This document shows positions 2,746 through 20,937 of a stretch of DNA of 64,000 nt, piece by piece. The stretch is from assembly GCA_047495785.1 (NCBI GenBank), contig JBLDXI010000021.1:806001-870000 (forward strand), in the 5' to 3' direction. The DNA is from Lepidodermella squamata. Taxonomy: Eukaryota; Animalia; Gastrotricha. The position numbers and the translations under genes were made by a program. Positions within the stretch are counted from its first letter, which is position 1. Every line of letters begins with the position of its first letter. The notes under the pieces are model-generated. The model saw only the letters and a list, made by a program, of their open reading frames with translations. It did no database searches and was not told the origin of the DNA.

Positions 2746-5181
2746 ATGGAACCAACTGAGGCTCAAAGCGATAGTGAATTTGTGATTAATACTATCCTCT
2801 CGAGCGTCAAATCAACGGATGAAGAGTCAAATGAAGTATAGTTTTTTCAATCATTTTATTTTTCAATTAATTCTTTACATTTTCAGAAGAAATCTGCCGA
2901 TGATGTTATAGCTAAGCTTGTCAATTTCTACGAGGAACGGCTGAATCGGCAGAAAGAGCAAATGAAAGACGAGTTCATGAAACTTTTAGCCGGAAAGGAA
3001 GACATCAAATCAGATACTGCGGCTTCTATCTCAGAAAAAGCTTGCAGCGTTAGCGCTAGCTCTGAAACTTGCAGCCAATGCCCGAAGGAAAGCGTTTGCG
3101 AGTCGAGTTCAACTTCGACCGAGACACCTGCAGAGGCTTCGACGACAAACTCCGCGGCTGAAGAAGATGTGATTGAAGTCGATATTCGCCCGTCGAGTTC
3201 TCAGCCGAAAATTCCACTTCTACACCTCGGCGGTGAATTTCCTTCTTCGCCACGTAAAGATCAGGAAGCAACGCCCACAAAAGAGCCCACCCAACCGCCG
3301 TTGCATGATATGAATTCTCATGTTTTGATGATGATGATGAATATGTTAGGTGGTGTTGGCGGCGTGAATCTCTTCGGCGATAAACCTGCTGAAAATGAGC
3401 CGGAAAAGCCCGAACCTGAACGCGAAAGTGCTACCCCGAAGCCTACGGTTAATGAAAATAACGAAGAGTCGGACTGTGAGGAGGAGATCGCCGCGGCTCA
3501 GCGAGACGACAATGTTCGCCAATCGTCAGAAAACGGAAATATCCGGCCAAATACTGGGACTTCGAATAATACTGATTACGACCCGGCTAATCCTCACTTT
3601 TTGAAACCACCTTCACCTAAAATTGACATCAATAATAATAACAATCAGCGCCATTACGATATGCCGCTGAGTGGACGTAACTCGCGTCGTGATAATGGTG
3701 ACTATTTATCTCCATCAACTTCCAGCGCCTCAATTCGTGTTCAAATGTATGAAAAACATCAGAAGCAAATCGCTGATCTGAAGGCGTATTACGAGGAAGA
3801 GCTCGACGAGTTGAAGGCGAAAGTCCACCAATTAGAAGAACAACAGCAACAGCAGCAGCATCGTTCGTCGATGTTTACGTCATCGCAATTCACAAATACG
3901 ACACCCTCGCCGAATAAGAACCGGCCGATGAATTTGTTGCAAAGCGCCGAGAAAGCGGATTTAGAGCGTGAATGCGCGTCACTGCGGCTTAAGGTGGACT
4001 GGCTGGAGCAGGCTTACAAGAACGCAACTCAACGTTTGAAAGACGCCGAAGTTCAGGTGGATGAACTTGCGACTAAGCTGAGCGGCTACACGCTACGCGT
4101 CGCAGATGCTAGCGGTGAAATCGAGGAGTTGCGCAACGAATGCCGGCATAAGGACGAAGAATTAGCTAGGCTGTTATCTCGGAATAACCGCCTTATGATG
4201 GAATGTGAGGAATCAGCTCGCATGCTGCAAATTAAAGATAAAAGCCTGGCGGAATCTGACGCGATGCTCAATCGGTTAATGCGAGAGTACCAATCGATGA
4301 GTAAAGATTTCGAATCGCTCAAGGCGAAGCACGAGTCATGCGAGGGTGTTATGCAAGACTCGAAGCAGGAATTGACAAATGCGAAACGTCAAATCAACAA
4401 AATGGCGTTTGAATTCAAAAGATTGGAACATGAAAATGATTTGTTGACTAAACGCTTGCAATTAACGACTTCGTTCAACGTCGCTGAGCGGTTTTCGACT
4501 CCGCCCATTTCGACCTCGCAATCAGCGTATCAAGTCCACGCGCCGTTGAGTGCTCGCGATTATCGAGAACGGGGCCAAAACGTGGCACCGGCCGGTTTGT
4601 CGTCGAGCGAGGCTCATAATGACCGCAAATTTGGCGGCGGGAAAGTTTCGTTCGGGGCTCCTTACGCTGTTAACCAGGATGATTCGAGCGATTCGACTGA
4701 TTTAGATCGCGATAATAGCCGGGTCAATGTTACCCCGCAAAAGGTTCAAATCTACCGCGATCAGGGCACCCAGGCCGCGTCTAGGGAGGACGAATCTGTT
4801 TTGTTACGAGCTGAACGTGAACTTTTCGGCAGTAAAAAGCGGAATAGCAATGAGGGAAACAGTAAAATGTCCCCTCGAAAATCGGGTATTGCAATTAGTA
4901 CGGAATTCGGACCGAGCGGTGGGAAAAATCGTATGGCTGGTATGGTCTCAGCCACCTTGAATGGGCCGACCAATGTTGAGCAGCAGTTCGATCGACTTTT
5001 GATTGAAAAGCAAAAAGTCGAGGCCAGTTTGAACCGGCTACCAGCTGTTCCCCACAATCAAACGATTCGGGCGAATAAAGAGCTGCTGGAGCATCAGCTC
5101 GAAGATATCGAACGTCGCTTGGCTAGTCTTCGTTTTCAGCTCAAAAAGTCGCATGTGATTCGGTCGAGCCTGAATGCTTAA
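2746..5181 (+). CDS. MPHOSPH9: M-phase phosphoprotein 9-like coiled-coil protein (exons 2746-2835, 2887-5181)
   Basis: EKHQKQIADLKAYYEEEL and the C-terminal FDRLLIEKQKVEASLNRLP...LASLRFQLKKSHVIRSS match the conserved MPHOSPH9 blocks; 51-nt GT-AG phase-0 intron 2836-2886 joins the upstream ATG in frame. Confidence 0.8.
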
Positions 5182-5621: not shown

Positions 5622-6098
5622 ATGCCTCCAAAAAAGACCTCGATACCAGTAAGTAAGCAGGTGAAGCCGGTTTATGGGAAAGTTCAGAAGAAATCGGCGC
5701 CCTCAACACCTCGATCTCAGACATCTAAGAAGCCTATGTTACTCACCCCAGCCTCATCGACGAAAAAACCGACCCCTCAAACGCCTACAACGTCTCGGGC
5801 GCATCACTTGCCGCAAACTCCCCCTGATACCCCTTTGAAATCAGCAATTTCTGGTATACATTTTTGCGGTTTTAATAAATCCTTATTGAATAATTTTATT
5901 ATAGATTACGAAGCTGAAATTCTGCACAAGTTTGACTTCGATTGGCGTTTCGGCCCCGTTTCAGGCATTTCTCGATCTCGCCGCTATCTACGAGCCCTTC
6001 ACACAGGAGCATTCGAACCGCCTAAAATCGTCATGGAAATCATCGAACGGGTCGGACCCGAGGCTGATCGAAACATCTGGGCATCTTATCAATTTTGA
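5622..6098 (+). CDS. POLD4: DNA polymerase delta subunit 4 (p12), with a likely in-frame 51-nt intron 5854-5904
   Basis: LHKFDFDWRFGPVSGISRSRRYLRA...EPPKIV...IW is the p12 signature; AT-rich gtatac...ttatag segment 5854-5904. Confidence 0.85.
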   Translation: MPPKKTSIPVSKQVKPVYGKVQKKSAPSTPRSQTSKKPMLLTPASSTKKPTPQTPTTSRAHHLPQTPPDTPLKSAISGIHFCGFNKSLLNNFIIDYEAEILHKFDFDWRFGPVSGISRSRRYLRALHTGAFEPPKIVMEIIERVGPEADRNIWASYQF

Positions 6099-6255
6099 AT
6101 TTTTTCTAATTGTGCAAACCGGAAAAAGACAATTCTAGCCAGATTCATATATATATATTTGCTCATAGAAAAAAACGGACAAAAATGAATGCAAAATTTA
6201 TCGTTTATTTGTTTAACCTCAATTAAATTGAAAGGTGAAATAATAAAATTGCTCG

Positions 6256-7599
6256 TTATTTCCGTCTGGGTTTTTTCGCCCGTGGCGACATTTTCGTTTG
6301 AGACGTGATGTCCTTTGCGATTTGATCGCGTTTATCAACTTGATCGGCTGATTCATCGACAAGTTGATTCAAGGCAGAATTATTATTGCTGCTGCTGCAG
6401 AGGATAGCGCCGATTTTTAAGGAGGAAGTGTTGCGAGGAAGTAGCTCTTTGCGATCGACGCTGAAGTTGTGCAAAACACACGCGGCTAAAACCGCAGTTT
6501 TAATATCATCTTCGGACTCGTCACCAGTGCCCAAGGCCACAAGACGAGGGAAGCGTCTGAGTAACTGCCGATGGGCCTCGCGCACTGTCACCCCGGCAAC
6601 ATGGCTGAGGTGGCTATTGAACATTTTTTCCGCCAGTAATTGCTCTCCCGTCGCCTGCGACAAACTTCCGGCAGGGAAGCGTGCAATCAACCACGGCAGT
6701 GATTTCGCCCGTATTTGCGGGGCTAAAATATGCGAGTCGCTAGGCAACAAATCTGCGCGACTTTTTTCAGACGACAGCTTTTGAAAGATTTTCGTTTCTT
6801 GAAAAACCTTGGCCAAATCGCCAGCATCCGCGGCGATGACACATGCCGAGTCAATGAAGCGTAGCCTATGATCGACTATGCCTTGTAAATAGGCGGAACT
6901 TGACCCGAGAGATGTCCATCCTATAACGCCAACAACGCCTCTCAGGCCGAAACTTTCGCTAAACAGGCAATCGGCGTGTTTTTGAGCGGCGTCTCGCTTC
7001 GTTGGAAAATAAATTAATTGAGCCGAGACTGTAGCAATTGCCTTTAAGGCGACTTGAACAATCCTTTTCGCAGTACTTGGCGATGGCAGGTCGAAAATCT
7101 GGGCCAGACTTTCCCAGGTTTCGGTCGAGCCTAAATACCTCAGACCGATTTGAATAGTTTTCAGCGGGTCGATTCTGACGTCATCGTAAGATATCGTATT
7201 CCGCGACAAAGCACCACATCCGGTTAATAAACGTAAAAAATCGTCGATTGAACGGTTAGATATGCGAAATTCGTTGAGTTGAAGCCGCTTCTCGTCGATT
7301 TCGTCAGTTTTTAAGGCGGCAACAGGTTGCGGAATCACCATGTGTTGAGGCACGGAGTTTTGAGGCGTAAATTCGTCGCCGTTCAATTCATCTTCATCAT
7401 CCGAGGAAGATGAACTAGAAACGAGTTCGTGCAGCTCCTGGAGTCGTTTAGCGACGGCTAGGTAGTAAAGAGGCGACGAATCAAGGCACAAACCCAGGGC
7501 GAATAGTGGACTAGCTTCAATTTCCATGTCGTCAAAGGCGGATGGGGCGACGCCGGCTAATGAAGGCGGCAGCATGGTTTGAGGAATGAACCGCCTCAT
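6256..7599 (-). CDS. HARBI1-like PIF/Harbinger transposase-derived protein, catalytically degenerate
   Basis: Harbinger motifs (LRYLGS..W..LA.IF helix-turn-helix, IYFPT, GVVGVIG, LQGIVDHRLRFID, LPWLI, FNSHLS, RRFPRL, AACVLHNF) in an intact 447-aa ORF; canonical acidic catalytic positions are replaced. Confidence 0.88.
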   Translation of the reverse strand: MRRFIPQTMLPPSLAGVAPSAFDDMEIEASPLFALGLCLDSSPLYYLAVAKRLQELHELVSSSSSSDDEDELNGDEFTPQNSVPQHMVIPQPVAALKTDEIDEKRLQLNEFRISNRSIDDFLRLLTGCGALSRNTISYDDVRIDPLKTIQIGLRYLGSTETWESLAQIFDLPSPSTAKRIVQVALKAIATVSAQLIYFPTKRDAAQKHADCLFSESFGLRGVVGVIGWTSLGSSSAYLQGIVDHRLRFIDSACVIAADAGDLAKVFQETKIFQKLSSEKSRADLLPSDSHILAPQIRAKSLPWLIARFPAGSLSQATGEQLLAEKMFNSHLSHVAGVTVREAHRQLLRRFPRLVALGTGDESEDDIKTAVLAACVLHNFSVDRKELLPRNTSSLKIGAILCSSSNNNSALNQLVDESADQVDKRDQIAKDITSQTKMSPRAKKPRRK

Positions 7600-8216
7600 T
7601 TGATGTGTAAAAAAATCTAAAAATTGAATTATTACAAAATTTAACTCAAATTTTCATCAGTTTTTTACTTTCTCCTTTTGGTCTTTAAAATAAATTTTAA
7701 TTAAATTTTCGAAGCGAATATTAAGTGCGCGTGATTATTTGTTTTATAGGAGGTGTGATTTCGAGTCACGAGACGCTGACGAGTATAATCGAAGTAATAA
7801 TTAAATTATTATCATCCCTTCGTGCGGAGAGGTCGGCGCGCCAGCGAGATAACGTAATGCAATAAATATGTAACGAGAGATTTCAGTCAGAGAAGATTTT
7901 TTCCGAAAAAAACAGACTGCGCAAAAATGAGGTAAAATAGAACAGTTTCTCTGTACACGTTGAAAAGATGAGATGAGAGAAGAGAAAAATATAACATTCA
8001 ATCGAGTAGCGAAAAATGAAATTATTTCCTTTTATTTTTCGCTCTCAATTTGTTTAACAAGCACGCATTTTTACGGTTATTTCTTTCAATTCACACGTAG
8101 TTCCGAGAGATAGATCGAGAAAAATATAGATTTTTTTTTATCTAAAATAAAAATAAAACTAGAGGTTAACAAATGAAATGATAATTGCGATTTTTTCATA
8201 ATAATTTATCGAAATT

Positions 8217-9858
8217 TTAGCTATTATTAGCGCTACTGTGTAAGGCGGCGCCGAGCGATGACGCCGTTGAAAGCTTCGCGCCCACCGTCGATCTCGCTAA
8301 GGCGTGCAAATTCGACGACGGCGCCGCGCGTTTGAAGCGAGACGCCATCGCGGCGTGGCTGTGGTGCGAAAGGCCGATGTTGTTGTTGCTGCTGTGATTT
8401 GGCTGAGGCATCGAATTATTGTTGTTATTGTTGTGCGACGACGAAGAAGAAGCACTGGAAGACGCCGTTCGTTTCTCGTAGAGATCAACAAACCGTTTGA
8501 AAAGCTCCAATTTACGATTCTCCATCTCAATCACCGCGCTCATGAAACTCGACAGAGCATTGCCAACAACTTCACCCTGACCGCCGTTGTTAGCAGTGCC
8601 GTTCTGGTGATATGCGTTGCTGTTATTCGCGTTATTCACGCTCAAATCAGCGCCATTATGCGCCTCGTAGTCGTTGATAACGCTGGGGGATGTGAATTTT
8701 CGTTTCCTACGGTTAAGAAGGAGAGGACTGGCGAAGGCCCCGGCAACGGCCAGGTCGTCGTAATTCAGATCGTTAGCGCCATTCGTTTCAGTTTTCATGT
8801 CACCCGTCTCGCCGAAATCGTCAACATCGAGGTTGTTATCGAAATCGACCGGTTCACCGCCGTTGCGTTTACTGGCTATGCTATTCAGTTCCTGTTCAAA
8901 CGGCGTATCGCCTAACAGTTCTTGCAACTCGTTGAAATACGGAAATGTGATCATGGAAGTTTCAGAGCCGTTCAGCAGCCCAGCTGCTATGCGGCGTTTC
9001 TGCTCGCGAGCGCGCAGATAACGCGCTTTCATGTATCGGAATTTGTCCCAGCACTGCTTGCCGATAACTGTTATACCGTCGTAGTCGCTTAGTGCCTTCG
9101 CGATTTTGTTCCAGATTTCGGTTTTCCGGTACTTGGGATCTTCGATTTTCACGCGGAATTTTCCGTAGAGATCAAGCAGTTTCGCAATTTTTTCGCGTGT
9201 CCATTTAACCTACAAAAATGAGAAAATAAACAAATTAAAAAAACCTTATAAATCTCCTTTGAATCCCCAAAATCAGTTCCTCAAAAAGTCCAAAGTTGGT
9301 TATGGGACATTAAACTCAATCTACCAATATTATCTCAAGAATAGTGACACCCTACAAAAATAGGAATCGGAATCCTTTCTTGGGATCCATTTTTTGTCCC
9401 AATAAACGGGTCAAGGCTAATTACTAATTACTACCTATTATGTACTACAGTTTTCCTATGCGGATATATGGTTTTTAACCAACGTATAATTGTAGTCACC
9501 CCTCAGGATTTTTCGAAAATTAAGCAGCTACGACTTGGGTTTTTATTCCATTTACAAAGCTTTTGCTAAAAGTTTTAGGTACCTGCGAAATTCCCTGTCC
9601 ATCCTCGCCACTAAGCAAGTCGCTGTCGAAATCAGCGCCTGCGCTTGATAGGCCGCCACTGCCGCCGCCGACAGTCGTCGTTAGGTCGTTGTCGGAGCCG
9701 TTGAACGGCGAGCTGTTGCGAACGATACCGTTGCCGCCGAGGTGGTGGCGTGCCGCTGAAACTGAACCGCCGTTAACAACAGGCATGCCGGAGCTGAGAT
9801 CGAGAACGCTTTCGTCGAGTTGCGATGCAGCGAATTGTTTACCGCCAGATTTAAACAT
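8217..9858 (-). CDS. Myb/SANT-like (trihelix/MADF-type) DNA-binding protein (exons 9858-9583, 9209-8217; ~422 aa)
   Basis: VKWTREKIAKLLDLY...EIWNKIAKAL...QCWDKFRYMKARY...FPYFNELQELLG, an NLS-like RRKRK and a C-terminal helix; phase-0 intron 9582-9210 (GT...AG). Confidence 0.85.
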
Positions 9859-12800
9859 TTAGAACATTGATCGGAAATGCGCGCACAGTTTCAAGTTCAA
9901 TCCGCCTTAATTATTGTAATCTCCGGCTTCGAAAAATAGCGCGTCTAATTAATTAAGGTGGACCTATTATATTAATAAAAGACAAAAAAATGATGTTTTT
10001 TCTGCGCGGCTTTGTTTTTGTAGCGATGAGTAGTATTGGGGCGGGGTTGATGATGTTGAGTAAGAGGGGGCGCTTTGGTCACAAAACAACACGAACAACA
10101 TAACAACAACAAGGAAACAAAAATAAGTCGGTCTATCTGCTATCATCGCTCTCTCTATCTTATTTTTGCGAGTCAACAGTTTTTGCTGCTCGGATGCTTT
10201 TTGTGCGCCGCCGTCTCTAGTCGAGTGTTGAGGATGCGGAAAACTAACTCGCTATAGCAGCAGCAGCCTAGACGACAAGAGAGAAGAAGGAACGACGACT
10301 TATTGTATTAATGCACGCGCGGCAAAAAGCGAGCGCGGAGGGCGGAATAAAAAGGTGGCGTGTTGGCTGGTTATGGCGCGGCGCGCGACACAACATGGTG
10401 CGGTTCATCGTCATCGTCGTTGTTTGACTAAGAAGAAAACGTGCGCTCATATAGTACGCCCCACTCCGCGCACGGTTCCAAGATGATGATGATGATGATG
10501 GCGAATGGCAGTGATGATGAAGTCATCGTGAGAGGTGCAAGTAAGCACGGCGGCATTCTCTTCCTATATCGCGTATAAAAAAGAGCGAATAGCAGCGACA
10601 CGACGTTAAACGGGTTTGGTTATGCGCGGCGGGCGCGGTTTTTCTCTTATCTACTACTACTGATGCTTGTTTTTCAGAGTCGCGAGCGGTGGCGAGAGCA
10701 CCGACTTCCTTACCTGTACCTTACTAGGTCTCTATTGTAATAACGCGCTCGCTCGCACAGTAAATCTGAGGGAGCGGGAATAGCTGATGGTAGAAAAATA
10801 ACTATATATTATACAAGAAAAAAGCAGCACAAAAGGCGAACGATGACGGCGCAAGATACACACGTAGTACACTCGACAATGGTAACGAGAGTGGCGGAAA
10901 AACGAATAGTTAGACATGAGGTAGTAGCTCGGCAGCAAAACAAAAAGAGCGACCGTGTCTTTTTTGCCTACTACTACTACTACTACTACCCCTGATCATA
11001 AGCGCGTAGAAATATACCAAGTCACGCATCTCACACGGCTCTTCCTGGTACAAATATTTTCGCCAGGCCCAGCCCCATTTGGTGCACGTTGATAATGATG
11101 ATGATGAGTCGCGAGCGCGAGCTCGGTCTCTCGCGCATGCAAAATAATTGTTGTTAATTGTTGTTGTGCACACAGGTAGAGGAAAAAAGTGCGAGACGGC
11201 GACGAAAATACAAATAGGTCAACAGATGTGCGCGCAAAAAATATCGCGTGAGATAGGAAATATCTGCCGATCCAATGATGACGATGACGATGATGATAAT
11301 GATGGAACCAGCGATGCGCAATGTAATAAAAATACGACGGGAAAAATTATTTTGTTTAATACAACCGCCACAAAAACAACAGAGGAGTCGATGATTTCTC
11401 GCTCGCGCGCGAAAAACAAAAAGATGATATATTACACCCGCTATTGTTGTAGAGCGATTGAAAAACGAATTGGATAAGAAAAATTGCGCCGCTCGTGTGC
11501 GATGAACAACAACAGCAGTCCCGTCATGTGCGATTTGTGTCGCGCGGCAAAATCATCATCATTGCCGTCGTCAACAATAACAACAAGAAAAACAGCGCGC
11601 CGAACACAACAGGATATCGGCGAGCGATGAGTACAATTTTTCGTTATGTTTTCAGGCGGTGCGACTAAATTTCAGCGGCAAAAATAAACATTATATTGCT
11701 TACAGAAAATAACACTGTAATAAAGCATGACGTTGTGAGCCTTTGTGCGCCCGTGTTGAGGAATAACGTTTTTAATTTTCTTCAATATAAGTATAACTCA
11801 GATCACAAAAACAAGGCGAAGTTATTCTTATACACAGCGCATGATGATTGGTTTTATAGTTTTAATAGGAAAAATTGCGATTTATTTTTCGTCGTCGTCG
11901 CGCGCGACTACTTAACTATTGTTGTTCAAGTGATGTAGAAGGAAAAAAAGTCGTCGCGGAATAAAATGAAAATATACGTATTGAGCGCGAACTTGTTGTT
12001 TTTGCGTCGACTTGCGCACGATGCGCCGCGCCGCCTTTTTTAATTCGAGACTCGCGCTTTGAAAGTATAAGAAACAATAATAGTATAAGGCGAAGAATAA
12101 CAGCAGAAAAACTCGAAATGCTCTTCACTCGTCGCGCCGCTTTCTCGGCGGTGGCCGTGTTTTATACTTGAGCGGGCGATGAATACTTCTTCGCACGACT
12201 CGCGCCCCCAATATATTAATGTCAAACTGCTCGCGCACAACATTGTTGTCGCTTTTTTTCTGGCAGTACATCTCCTTCCTTTTCATCTCCTCCCGGCGCA
12301 TTTTTCAATCGATCTCCTCTCTAGGGCTAAGTATAATGCAATATAGTAGGCGCGGTCTTTTTTCACTAGGCTTCACGGCGCAACAAACTGCTGTCGTCAA
12401 AAACATGCGATGAGTATATATCAAACAAGCGTGTGCGATGCGAAAATAATGTGACAGGCGCGCGCAAGTCAATTGACGGCGCAAAGAAGTGTGTAGTATA
12501 AACTTGGCAGCGAGGCGCGTCGATGCACAGCAGAAGCTTGTCGTCGTCGTCGTCGCGCGCGATTGACATAAACACATGCGATTCAAGTGCGCCATTATAT
12601 GCGAGCGCCGCTCTCTCTCTCTCTCGCGCCGTCGCCGTTGTGATGTTTGTTGTGAACGAACGGCGCGGCGGCGCCACAGAGGGCCGATTCTTTCATGCGA
12701 TTACCGGCGGCATGCGTGAAAAAAATATATCGCTGCGCAGCAATTGATTACACGATTGTGTGTGCGTGTGTGTGTACAAGGGAGCGCAAAAACAACAACT

Positions 12801-18656: not shown

Positions 18657-20937
18657 TTATTTTGTTGACGAAAATTGTTGGTAAATAAACTCGTAAAGTT
18701 CAATAGTGGGCCGGCGTCGTGGCGAAACCAATACAACGTTCGAATAATAAGAAAGCAAAATCTGAAAAACTTGTCGGACCTCTAGTTTGCGCTCATTCGC
18801 CAAGAAATTGTGCATTTTCTCCAGGTCCGATTGAAGAACTGGGTCGGAAAACGTGAAATAAACAAGATCACGGCCTGCAATTGAAGCAGCGAGAAGCTGG
18901 ACTATAAATTTAAGTCGAGGATCGCCTCCAAAAACGCCGCATCCCCAATTTCCAGTAGCAACAGCCGAGGGAGGTGAGCCATTTTTCGACTCTTCGACCG
19001 GGTGAAACGCGACTAGGGCTTTCGTTAATTCACGGCGAATAAAATGCGGCTCAAATTGCTGAGATCTCGAGACAAAATGAGTGGCATCAGCAGCTACCAC
19101 ACGTGTGTCGATCCTGCCGAACTGATCTCGAGGAGTTTGGTCCTGGAAATCACCCGCCCATTGCAGCGATCCACCATAACCAGTGTATGAACTGAAACGT
19201 TCGCAGCCAGTGATAAGCACAGCTTCGTTATCTTCCATCCGTTCGACGATCAATCGCGATAGAATAAGTTCAGGGCAAATTAGGAATCTGATCTCCTCCT
19301 GCACAGCACCTTCATCCAAAACCCCACCACCGATGAACATATTGGCAAAATCCATTTGTAGCATGCCTATTCCGTCAGATTCAATCGTGCCCTCCGCGTA
19401 AATTTTGCATTTCGACAAATTTTCCGTGAAAGTTGACCAGCCAGGGTTCTTCGCAAGGCAATGACGGGCGAATGTTACGTAACCATCCGGCCGCTGGTCA
19501 AATTCTTTGGCGATGCGTCGAAAATAATGCACGATGAATTTCAGTTTCTCGCATTTCAAACGAAGCAAAGGATCCGAGTTATTTGCCTTTGAAAATATAT
19601 TATAAATATTTCGAAAATATTATGTTTAAAATATTTACTGTTCCCCTTCGCCTAGGAAATGAGTAAAGACCGTAGAAATTTATCGACGGGTAATCATCGG
19701 GTCGCCGTGGAAATGTGCAGAGAAAAGCATTAGCTATGACAAATTTTTATTGCAAAATCAAAATATATTGAGGAGGAATATTTACCAAGCAAACAAGCGA
19801 TTTGCTTCTGCGATAATGTGACCGACTGAGCTCGTTCGCGTTGAAGAAGCGGAATAGGAATTTCGAACATTTCAGGTATTGATAGGGCTAAGGAAACTAT
19901 CTTCGGCAGAATTAGCGAGAAAAATTCCTTGGTTTCGGCCGCTGTCATTTCGCTATTGAACAAATGATGCAGGCTCTCGAAGTTCAAATACTTGTTCAAA
20001 TGGTTGTAGCTAGAAAAATCATGGAAAATGGAATAAATAATTTATCCAAATAAACATGAAATACCTGGTTATGGCATCTTCAAGTTCGTAACTTGTCCGG
20101 ATAGGGTCTTTAAAGGCTTTCTTGACCATTTCCCATTTGGAAGTGAATTTTTTCTTTGATTCCGGGGAGACGCTATCTGAGCGTTCCATTGAATCCCGCT
20201 GGGAAAGAATCGACATCAATATTTTGCTTCTCGCATCAAAATCATCTCCCTTACTGGGCTTTCAGTTTCTTTGACAGGGTATACACACTTGCGACTGGCT
20301 GGTAAACGAACATGATCGTTGTCCCAAACATCCCAACCAGCGCTTATAGTTAACGACCCCTGTAAATCGGCTTATTTTCGGCATTGGGACGATTCAGGTA
20401 ATAACTTACAGCTTTACGGAACAATTCTGTGACGTTACACATTATAGGACCATTTTCTGTATTTCCCTCAACGTCTTCATCCTGCGAAAATTTCAATGCA
20501 TCATTTGACGATTTGTAACAAATCAAAGAAATCGTACATCTGGACGAGGAGGTGATTCTGCTACGAATGAAATCGTGCTACTTCGACTTTCATATTCAAT
20601 TTCCATTGTCTGATGTAGAACCGGTAAATCTTGGGCCAATTTCACGGGACTGGGAGTGCCGAGCTTTCTTGGGCTTCTTCTTAAAACAGTCTCAGTTTTG
20701 ACACTCAGAGCTTCTGACTCACTTGAAGCAGCTTTGACTTTATCTAAGGGCAGAAAATTAGTAGTAAGTAAGATACAATGATATTGATTTCCCGACTTTT
20801 CTTGAAGCAATAAATCAGGTCATCAATAGTTATTTCAGGCCGGTTATCAACTCACCAGGAGACTTTGATTTTCTGCCTTGAGACGAGCGCTTGAAAAATG
20901 AATCCAGGGTAGTTTGGCCAAGTTTCCTCTTCGACAT
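18657..20937 (-). CDS. PARG: Poly(ADP-ribose) glycohydrolase, multi-exon
   Basis: Catalytic DFANMFIGGGVLDEGAVQEEIRF, TGNWGCGVFGGD and LSQKQIACLL motifs; N-terminal PIP-box-like QTTLDSFF; several short GT-AG introns. Confidence 0.95.

Follow-up and report, generated by a model that had tools for sequence, protein, structure and literature searches.

Layout of the locus

We analysed a stretch of 64,000 nucleotides (nt) from the Lepidodermella squamata genome (assembly GCA_047495785.1, contig JBLDXI010000021.1, positions 806,001 to 870,000), called the window below, and concentrated on two adjacent genes at positions 6256-9858. On the minus strand, a two-exon gene with a Myb-type domain is followed by a 617-bp spacer and then by an intronless open reading frame (ORF) of 447 amino acids (aa). 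The latter descends from a transposase of the PIF/Harbinger superfamily and has lost its catalytic triad. The exon structure was read from the contigs of a sequencing run, X1, in which both the Myb intron and a 51-nt intron of the neighbouring gene POLD4 are spliced out and a cDNA adaptor is present; therefore, run X1 is RNA. The gene models at the locus are as follows.

9858-9583 and 9209-8217 (-): coding sequence of the Myb gene, 422 aa, from a spliced RNA contig
9583-9965 (-): exon 1 of the Myb gene, with a 5' untranslated region (UTR) at about 9859-9965 and 92 codons at 9858-9583, from an RNA contig over 9581-9965
9210-9582 (-): Myb intron, GT..AG, 373 nt, skipped in the X1 RNA contig (its ends read CT..AC on the plus strand)
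8217-9209 (-): exon 2 of the Myb gene, 330 codons plus stop
7600-8216 (-): intergenic spacer, 617 bp, with the 3' UTR of the Myb gene and, for the transposase-derived gene, its 5' end
6256-7599 (-): transposase-derived gene, intronless, 447 aa, without a catalytic triad, from the ORF and from profile and fold matches

A preliminary description of the locus, made from the DNA letters alone, had drawn it in much the same way. The ORF at 6256-7599 (-) is intact and contains the three strings quoted there (GVIGWTS, LAPQI and VREAH), the gap to the intron-containing Myb gene on the same strand is the stated 617 bp (8216-7600), and the intron is confirmed by RNA. The distance from the 3' end of the ORF to POLD4, given there as about 160 bp, was measured as 157 bp: POLD4 (PF04081) runs convergently at 5622-6098 (+), and positions 6099-6255 separate its stop codon from that of the transposase-derived ORF.

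Descent of the 447-aa protein from PIF/Harbinger transposases

A Pfam scan of the single 447-aa sequence gave no match, DDE_Tnp_4 included, even at an E-value of 10, and a word-index protein search with the ORF found one protein only, P0001, at 51% identity. When the ORF and P0001 were combined into a profile and run with HMMER against 1.84 billion representative proteins, 67 further proteins were retrieved with E-values from 8e-12 to 1e-3. The ten best of these matches were scanned, and 10/10 carry DDE_Tnp_4 (PF13359), several of them together with HTH_Tnp_4 and Plant_tran. A profile-profile comparison with hhalign of the three orthologues described below with 28 DDE_Tnp_4 proteins gave a probability of 100% and an E-value of 2e-44 over 314 columns. 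By language-model features, the nearest clusters were the DDE_Tnp_4 and ALP1-like ones, at 0.93-0.96. Identity to relatives outside the three orthologues was 19-26%.

The AlphaFold2 (AF2) model of the protein reached a mean predicted local distance difference test (pLDDT) of 79.9, with the core above 90. Compared with atlas models of DDE_Tnp_4 proteins, it gave template modelling (TM) scores of 0.61-0.72 over about 300-330 residues, and ALP1-like clusters were among the nearest. This model was built on a DDE_Tnp_4 alignment, so the fold evidence depends on the sequence evidence. Among solved structures, those nearest to the core were the Tn5, piggyBac and Tn3 transposases and retroviral integrases (Z 6.7-8.4). 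A Foldseek search of the model against PDB gave no match at E<=0.001, and a sequence-profile search for solved structures found no relative of either protein. By descent, the 447-aa protein belongs to the PIF/Harbinger transposase superfamily (DDE_Tnp_4). The earlier label of a HARBI1-like protein therefore holds as DDE_Tnp_4 homology, which came from the two-sequence profile, hhalign, the language-model features and the fold, not from Pfam on the single sequence. The following parts were delimited in the protein.

7426-7536 (-): N-terminal peptide, residues about 22-58, the best conserved stretch and a candidate Myb docking site
7015-7302 (-): helix-turn-helix (HTH) region, residues about 100-195, which aligns with the HTH_Tnp_4 part of relatives
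6430-6936 (-): RNase H-like core, residues about 222-390, from multiple and profile-profile alignment
6259-6276 (-): C-terminal basic cluster KKPRRK, residues 442-447, from a pattern scan; candidate nuclear localisation signal

The HTH region was modelled with pLDDT above 90, and residues 114-195 match the HTH domains of sigma region 4, DeoR and Tc3 (Z 5.5-6.4). A basic tail ends the protein in 3/3 orthologues.

Loss of the catalytic triad

The three motif strings lie at G224-S230 (GVIGWTS), L292-I296 (LAPQI) and V339-H343 (VREAH). The multiple alignment and hhalign agreed on the columns that hold the two aspartates and the glutamate of DDE_Tnp_4, which are occupied here as follows.

6919-6921 (-): first aspartate column, G227 in the window; G in P0001 and A in L002
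6718-6720 (-): second aspartate column, P294 in the window; P in P0001 and S in L002
6580-6582 (-): glutamate column, R340 in the window; Q in P0001 and R in L002

The triad, which the preliminary description had suspected to be lost, is thus absent on proper alignment in all three orthologues. In addition, about 20 residues that follow the first aspartate are deleted; they correspond to the hairpin with the Y.NRK motif of active relatives. Since the aspartate columns differ from one orthologue to another, catalysis no longer constrains them. With the triad gone and one hairpin missing, the protein therefore cannot cut DNA in the usual way, and the alignments indicate a transposase-derived protein that is catalytically dead with its fold intact. 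We did not take the invariant glutamate E341, one position past the glutamate column, as a rescue without both aspartates.

We considered whether the protein might still work as a nuclease or recombinase through other acidic residues, namely E341, D243 and D250. E341 is invariant and sits beside the catalytic column, and D243 and D250 are invariant as well. On the other hand, the aspartate columns read G/G/A and P/P/S, varying and never acidic, the hairpin after the first strand is deleted, and D243 and D250 are non-catalytic positions of the family that are conserved in active relatives too. Residual cutting by such residues is very unlikely in our view.

Three of the nearest DDE_Tnp_4 relatives, from other organisms (P0005, P0008 and P0018), likewise lack the first aspartate, with GAIGSTH, GCLGATH and GVIGGSD at the motif. 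Judged by these motifs, they may be further dead or domesticated copies.

The Myb partner gene

The upstream gene encodes three parts of interest.

8889-9209 (-): Myb_DNA-bind_4 (trihelix-type) domain, PF13837, the first 107 residues of exon 2
8697-8711 (-): basic cluster RRKRK, from a pattern scan; candidate nuclear localisation signal
8466-8558 (-): conserved C-terminal helix, exon-2 residues 218-248; candidate helix for protein-protein interaction

The Myb_DNA-bind_4 match is clear (E 8.7e-13, 48.9 bits with the cut-off at 27) and covers profile positions 3-89 of 89, while the match of exon 2 to MADF is marginal only. The RRKRK cluster is unchanged in the Myb orthologue P0069, and an N-terminal acidic region of the protein is conserved in L002. 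A low-confidence model shows the C-terminal region, conserved in L001 also, as a helix; AF2 modelling of the Myb protein from a two-sequence alignment reached a pLDDT of 38.5 and was unusable. TSNARE1 derives from a Harbinger Myb-like gene. PF13837-type domains occur in MSANTD and TSNARE1-type clusters, and MSANTD has been described as descending from Harbinger Myb-like genes (PMC9392472).

The Myb intron (9210-9582) is missing in L002, where the ORF (7959-9026) runs uninterrupted across the same junction; therefore, an intron was gained or lost. Inside this intron, a near-copy of the acceptor (9351-9366, compared with 9209-9224) lies 142 nt upstream of the acceptor used.

Conservation, synteny and selection

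The pair was found in two further species, L001 and L002. On the L001 contig of 3.2 kb, the C-terminal part of the Myb gene comes with a spacer of 853 bp, an orthologue of the transposase-derived protein (489 aa) and, on the other strand, POLD4. On the 28-kb metagenome scaffold of L002, an intronless Myb gene is followed by a 548-bp spacer and a 472-aa orthologue, with POLD4, the coiled-coil gene seen in the window and additional genes flanking. The L002-type protein was present in three other assemblies too (L003-L005), a relative occurring in four separate ENA metagenome assemblies. Scans of the JGI metagenomes, one per protein alignment, returned no further orthologues.

Myb-first adjacency on the same strand is kept in 3/3 species, with spacers of 617, 853 and 548 bp, and the two genes are found at the same place in all three. 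The order shared with L002 extends further: XPG-like, PARG, DUF1358, Myb, dead transposase, POLD4 and the coiled-coil gene, about 24 kb collinear, in which the XPG-like, PARG and DUF1358 genes of L002 correspond to window positions 23776-13553. Identity between the transposase-derived protein and its two orthologues is 57% and 43%. The coiled-coil neighbour is 45% identical to its counterpart in L002, so the domesticated gene evolves about like an ordinary neighbour.

These data bear on whether both genes came from the transposon. Only the transposase-derived gene might have done so, the Myb gene being an older host gene that became its neighbour by chance or through later selection. We obtained no sequence link between the Myb protein and a transposon-borne Myb-like protein, and conservation is much higher in the Myb domain than in the partner protein, which is what an old transcription factor would show. 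Against this, the Myb gene is equally narrow in its distribution (one orthologue in 5.8 billion proteins and none in the JGI metagenomes), all three species retain the order, strand and spacing of a Harbinger element, and PF13837-type domains belong to clusters described as derived from Harbinger Myb-like genes. We consider an older host origin of the Myb gene rather improbable.

Between species, the proportion of synonymous differences (pS) was 0.74-0.85, which is saturated, and that of non-synonymous differences (pN) was 0.20-0.43. A formal dN/dS is inestimable at this distance, dS being saturated, and pN is far below pS. Within the transposase-derived ORF, the haplotype differences listed amount to at least 24 sites, 21 synonymous and 3 non-synonymous. 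The contrast between nucleotide and protein change was sharpest in short stretches. The Myb domain has 106/107 residues identical to L002 over 63 nucleotide differences (54 of them at third positions), and the Myb C-terminal helix has 29/31 residues identical to L002 over 22 nucleotide differences. In the 29-residue core of the transposase N-terminal peptide, 29/29 residues agree with L001, and each of the 20 nucleotide differences there is synonymous. This peptide is nearly invariant in the three species, compared with 43-57% identity over the whole protein. Both genes are under strong purifying selection.

The DNA run X2 contains two haplotypes (over 7261-7462 and over the whole ORF 6256-7599), one equal to the window and the other about 2.5% different. 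The second haplotype is the one displayed by the RNA run X1.

A quick maximum-likelihood tree built from 65 sequences grouped the three orthologues as a clade with a Shimodaira-Hasegawa-like approximate likelihood ratio test (SH-aLRT) value of 100. No internal branch of the tree is longer than the one that leads to this clade (2.46 changes per column), and the 62 nearest library proteins include no supported sister; such a position is consistent with a domestication that is old and confined to one lineage, with fast change afterwards. From the same long, isolated branch we infer that the event was independent of the named domesticated genes. The preliminary description had proposed an independent domestication that kept the ancestral linkage. 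The co-domesticated pair stood, with synteny in three species, strong purifying selection and transcription of both genes behind it; the word independent keeps the strength of an inference from a long branch, and the chromatin or anti-transposon role suggested there is a putative one.

The pair is not a mobile element

Around the pair (5900-10400), we found no convincing inverted repeats of the terminal inverted repeat (TIR) type and no TWA duplication. The best inverted-repeat pairs there were 14-27 nt long, 70-93% complementary, A/T-rich and badly placed, and none brackets the genes, in agreement with what had first been noticed. Within the 64-kb window, both genes, the spacer and the intron are each present once, and DNA-run contig depth over the pair was similar to that of the flanks.

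For the reading as a Harbinger element that is decaying or mobile even now, or as a neutral pseudogene pair, we found nothing in favour beyond the homology itself. Speaking against this reading are the lack of TIRs, intact ORFs at one syntenic site in three species at saturated dS, a ratio of 21:3 synonymous to non-synonymous changes among the haplotype differences listed, and transcription of both genes. Its probability is practically negligible.

Three candidates were discarded in the course of the analysis: an active element was ruled out by the missing TIRs, the missing triad and the fixed syntenic site, a pseudogene pair by the intact ORFs, transcription and purifying selection, and a chance ORF was rejected.

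Transcription of the pair

Contigs of X1 cover the transposase-derived ORF at 6283-6645 and 6659-7560. They cover the coding sequence of the Myb gene and its 5' UTR to 9965, and on the spacer side 8429-8068 and 8000-7744 (3' UTR). No X1 contig lies over the Myb intron, over 7561-7743 or upstream of 10076, which argues against carry-over of DNA in this run. Both genes are transcribed. As X1 consists of contigs, expression level and transcript ends cannot be read from it.

The Myb RNA contig stops at 7744, about 145 nt ahead of the ATG of the transposase-derived gene, and because of this short distance joint transcription of the two genes is possible. Joint transcription has been annotated for one Anopheles pair (PMC9710019). 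Just before the second ATG, two features could serve such an arrangement.

7656-7674 (-): 19-nt element GAGAAAGTAAAAAACTGAT, which contains GTAAAA; a T-rich ..AG comes after it at 7617-7618, 17 nt ahead of the ATG
7668-7617 (-): candidate 5'-UTR intron of 52 nt, or trans-splice acceptor

L001 has the same 19-mer together with TTTTTAG 19 nt before its ATG, and L002 has ..ATAG 19 nt before its ATG. Judged by these motifs, 7668-7617 could act in either way; no RNA joint at 7617-7674 was seen in the X1 contigs. One primary transcript might serve both genes and be resolved, shortly ahead of the second ATG, by the mini-intron or by trans-splicing.

At the 5' end of the Myb RNA contig, X1 shows 24 non-genomic letters, ATCTGCGAATTTGATTTGTGTCTA in RNA sense, joined at an acceptor-like site ..AATAG (9965-9964). 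The 24-mer was sought in the 64-kb window as an upstream exon and was absent there. A spliced leader, a distant 5' exon and an assembly chimera are all possible sources.

Proposed origin and function

We consider it likely that a single insertion gave rise to both genes, that both were domesticated, and that their proteins act in a nuclear complex. One PIF/Harbinger transposon would have inserted beside POLD4 in an ancestor of at least three species; the ends of the element would then have been lost and both its genes turned into host genes. The downstream gene encodes a protein that keeps the HTH and RNase H-like fold with no catalytic acidic residue, and the upstream gene (9858-8217, -) would encode its Myb/trihelix DNA-binding partner. 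Taking Harbinger3_DR, HARBI1/NAIF1, ALP1/ALP2 and HDP1/HDP2 as models, we propose a nuclear complex of the two proteins: the Myb domain, which hardly varies, would recognise a fixed DNA motif, and the dead transposase would be a scaffold or adaptor to other factors, probably of chromatin or transcription. The transposase N-terminal peptide and the Myb C-terminal helix would be the likeliest contact surfaces.

The layout agrees with that of the two-gene Harbinger elements, in which the Myb-like gene comes first and the transposase second (PMC9710019), the same as here. Where such systems have been characterised, the Myb-like partner attaches both to DNA and to the transposase's N-terminal end, and it aids the nuclear entry of the transposase (Sinzelle et al. 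2008, as summarised in PMC9392472). By analogy, the frozen state of the N-terminal peptide and of the Myb domain agrees with a complex to which the Myb protein would give DNA binding and the dead transposase a scaffold.

Several points weigh against this origin and function. The exon-2 orthologue P0069, 58% identical, was the sole significant relative of the Myb protein among 5.8 billion proteins in a word-index search. Beside two near transposase relatives (on the contigs of P0002 and P0004), no Myb gene was called and tblastn gave no match. The Harbinger origin of the Myb gene is suggested by its domain type, order and orientation and by a shared narrow distribution. Complex formation and DNA binding by the pair are predicted by analogy with the systems named above. 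Finally, both proteins carry a basic cluster (KKPRRK and RRKRK), so each may enter the nucleus alone, and partner-dependent import would not be required.

The last point leads to a further explanation, that both genes were domesticated and their products act separately, with adjacency as a historical leftover and no physical complex. It would accord with each protein having its own basic cluster resembling a nuclear localisation signal (NLS), with the very different rates at which the two proteins evolve, and with the observation of Markova et al. that linkage is not needed for co-domestication (PMC9710019). Linkage, order and orientation were nevertheless held in three species despite saturated synonymous divergence, and the N-terminal end of the transposase, the partner-binding region in characterised systems, is the best conserved stretch of the protein. 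We accord separate action a low probability.

Joint action in a nuclear complex, the reading we prefer, can be taken one step further. The pair would then be a sequence-specific regulator that recognises the ends of MITEs of the Harbinger type (miniature inverted-repeat transposable elements), with the Myb protein reading the old TIR motif and the dead transposase docking a silencing or activating complex. We regard this extension as an unlikely one. If it were true, a MITE-recognising pair would repress those Harbinger relatives that remain or connect genes bearing MITEs in a single network.

Comparison with known pairs

HARBI1 retains the DDE triad, unlike the protein here, and the genes HARBI1 and NAIF1 are not known to be adjacent. 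As in the present pair, a transposase-derived and a Myb-like-derived protein are combined there, and HARBI1 and NAIF1 interact (PMC9392472). Autonomous PIF/Harbinger elements (Harbinger3_DR, Ping/Pong) share with the locus the two-gene layout of Myb-like and DDE_Tnp_4 genes and the HTH plus RNase H-like architecture; by contrast, the locus has no TIRs, no triad, a deleted hairpin, one copy in the window and a fixed syntenic position.

To our knowledge, the Harbinger-derived pairs of plants have not been reported as tandem neighbours. They belong to a separate kingdom and to separate domestication events; the pairs ALP1/ALP2, HDP1/HDP2 and HHP1/SANT1-4 interact and are found in Polycomb repressive complex 2 (PRC2), histone acetyltransferase and HDA6 complexes (PMC9392472; PMC5339849).

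The closest parallel is found in insects, for which at least four adjacent transposase-MADF co-domestications are known and origin from a single insertion has been proposed as the common route (Markova et al. 2022, PMC9710019). These are Drosophila DPLG7/DPM7, Anopheles APLG1/APM1 and APLG2/APM2, and Lepidoptera LPLG2/LPM2 (PMC9710019). Like them, the locus has adjacent transposase-derived and Myb/MADF-like genes, no TIRs, syntenic orthologues and purifying selection (PMC9710019). The insect pairs are single-copy, without target-site duplications, and some are transcribed together (PMC9710019); here, one copy lies within the 64-kb window. The signs by which Markova et al. 2022 recognised co-domestication, namely orthologous syntenic ORFs, purifying selection on both genes, adjacency and expression, were all found. 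The differences from the insect pairs are the other lineage, the partner, which is Myb_DNA-bind_4 by Pfam with MADF marginal, and the transposase-derived protein, too diverged here for Pfam.

Adjacent co-domesticated PIF pairs are an established, recurrent pattern, and no new category is opened by this one. A literature search found no report of such a pair in rotifers. The locus adds a well-supported case in which both Harbinger genes would have been domesticated from one insertion, apparently outside insects, vertebrates and plants, and it supports a model of joint co-option, the transposase together with its Myb partner. Two of its features are useful: the triad is wholly erased, and the Myb domain and the transposase N-terminal peptide are almost frozen. 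These frozen stretches mark probable sites of DNA recognition and partner contact, which would ease the experimental dissection of the complex.

Neighbouring genes

The 51-nt intron of POLD4 (5853-5903) is confirmed by RNA; it is in-frame, and therefore POLD4 is seen as a single ORF. The POLD4 RNA contig extends to 6232, 24 nt short of the stop codon of the convergent transposase-derived gene. AATAAA motifs resembling poly(A) signals on each strand (6099-6283) suggest that the 3' UTRs of POLD4 and the transposase-derived gene overlap.

Two further neighbours, both part of the order shared with L002, were located in the window. The PARG gene lies at 18675-20011 (-); the atlas cluster closest to it is found most often in Rotifera, a weak hint of phylum at most. 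The coiled-coil gene, at 2962-5181 (+), encodes a protein of 739 aa with faint family matches (ATG16, Filament) and with 45% identity and synteny in L002.

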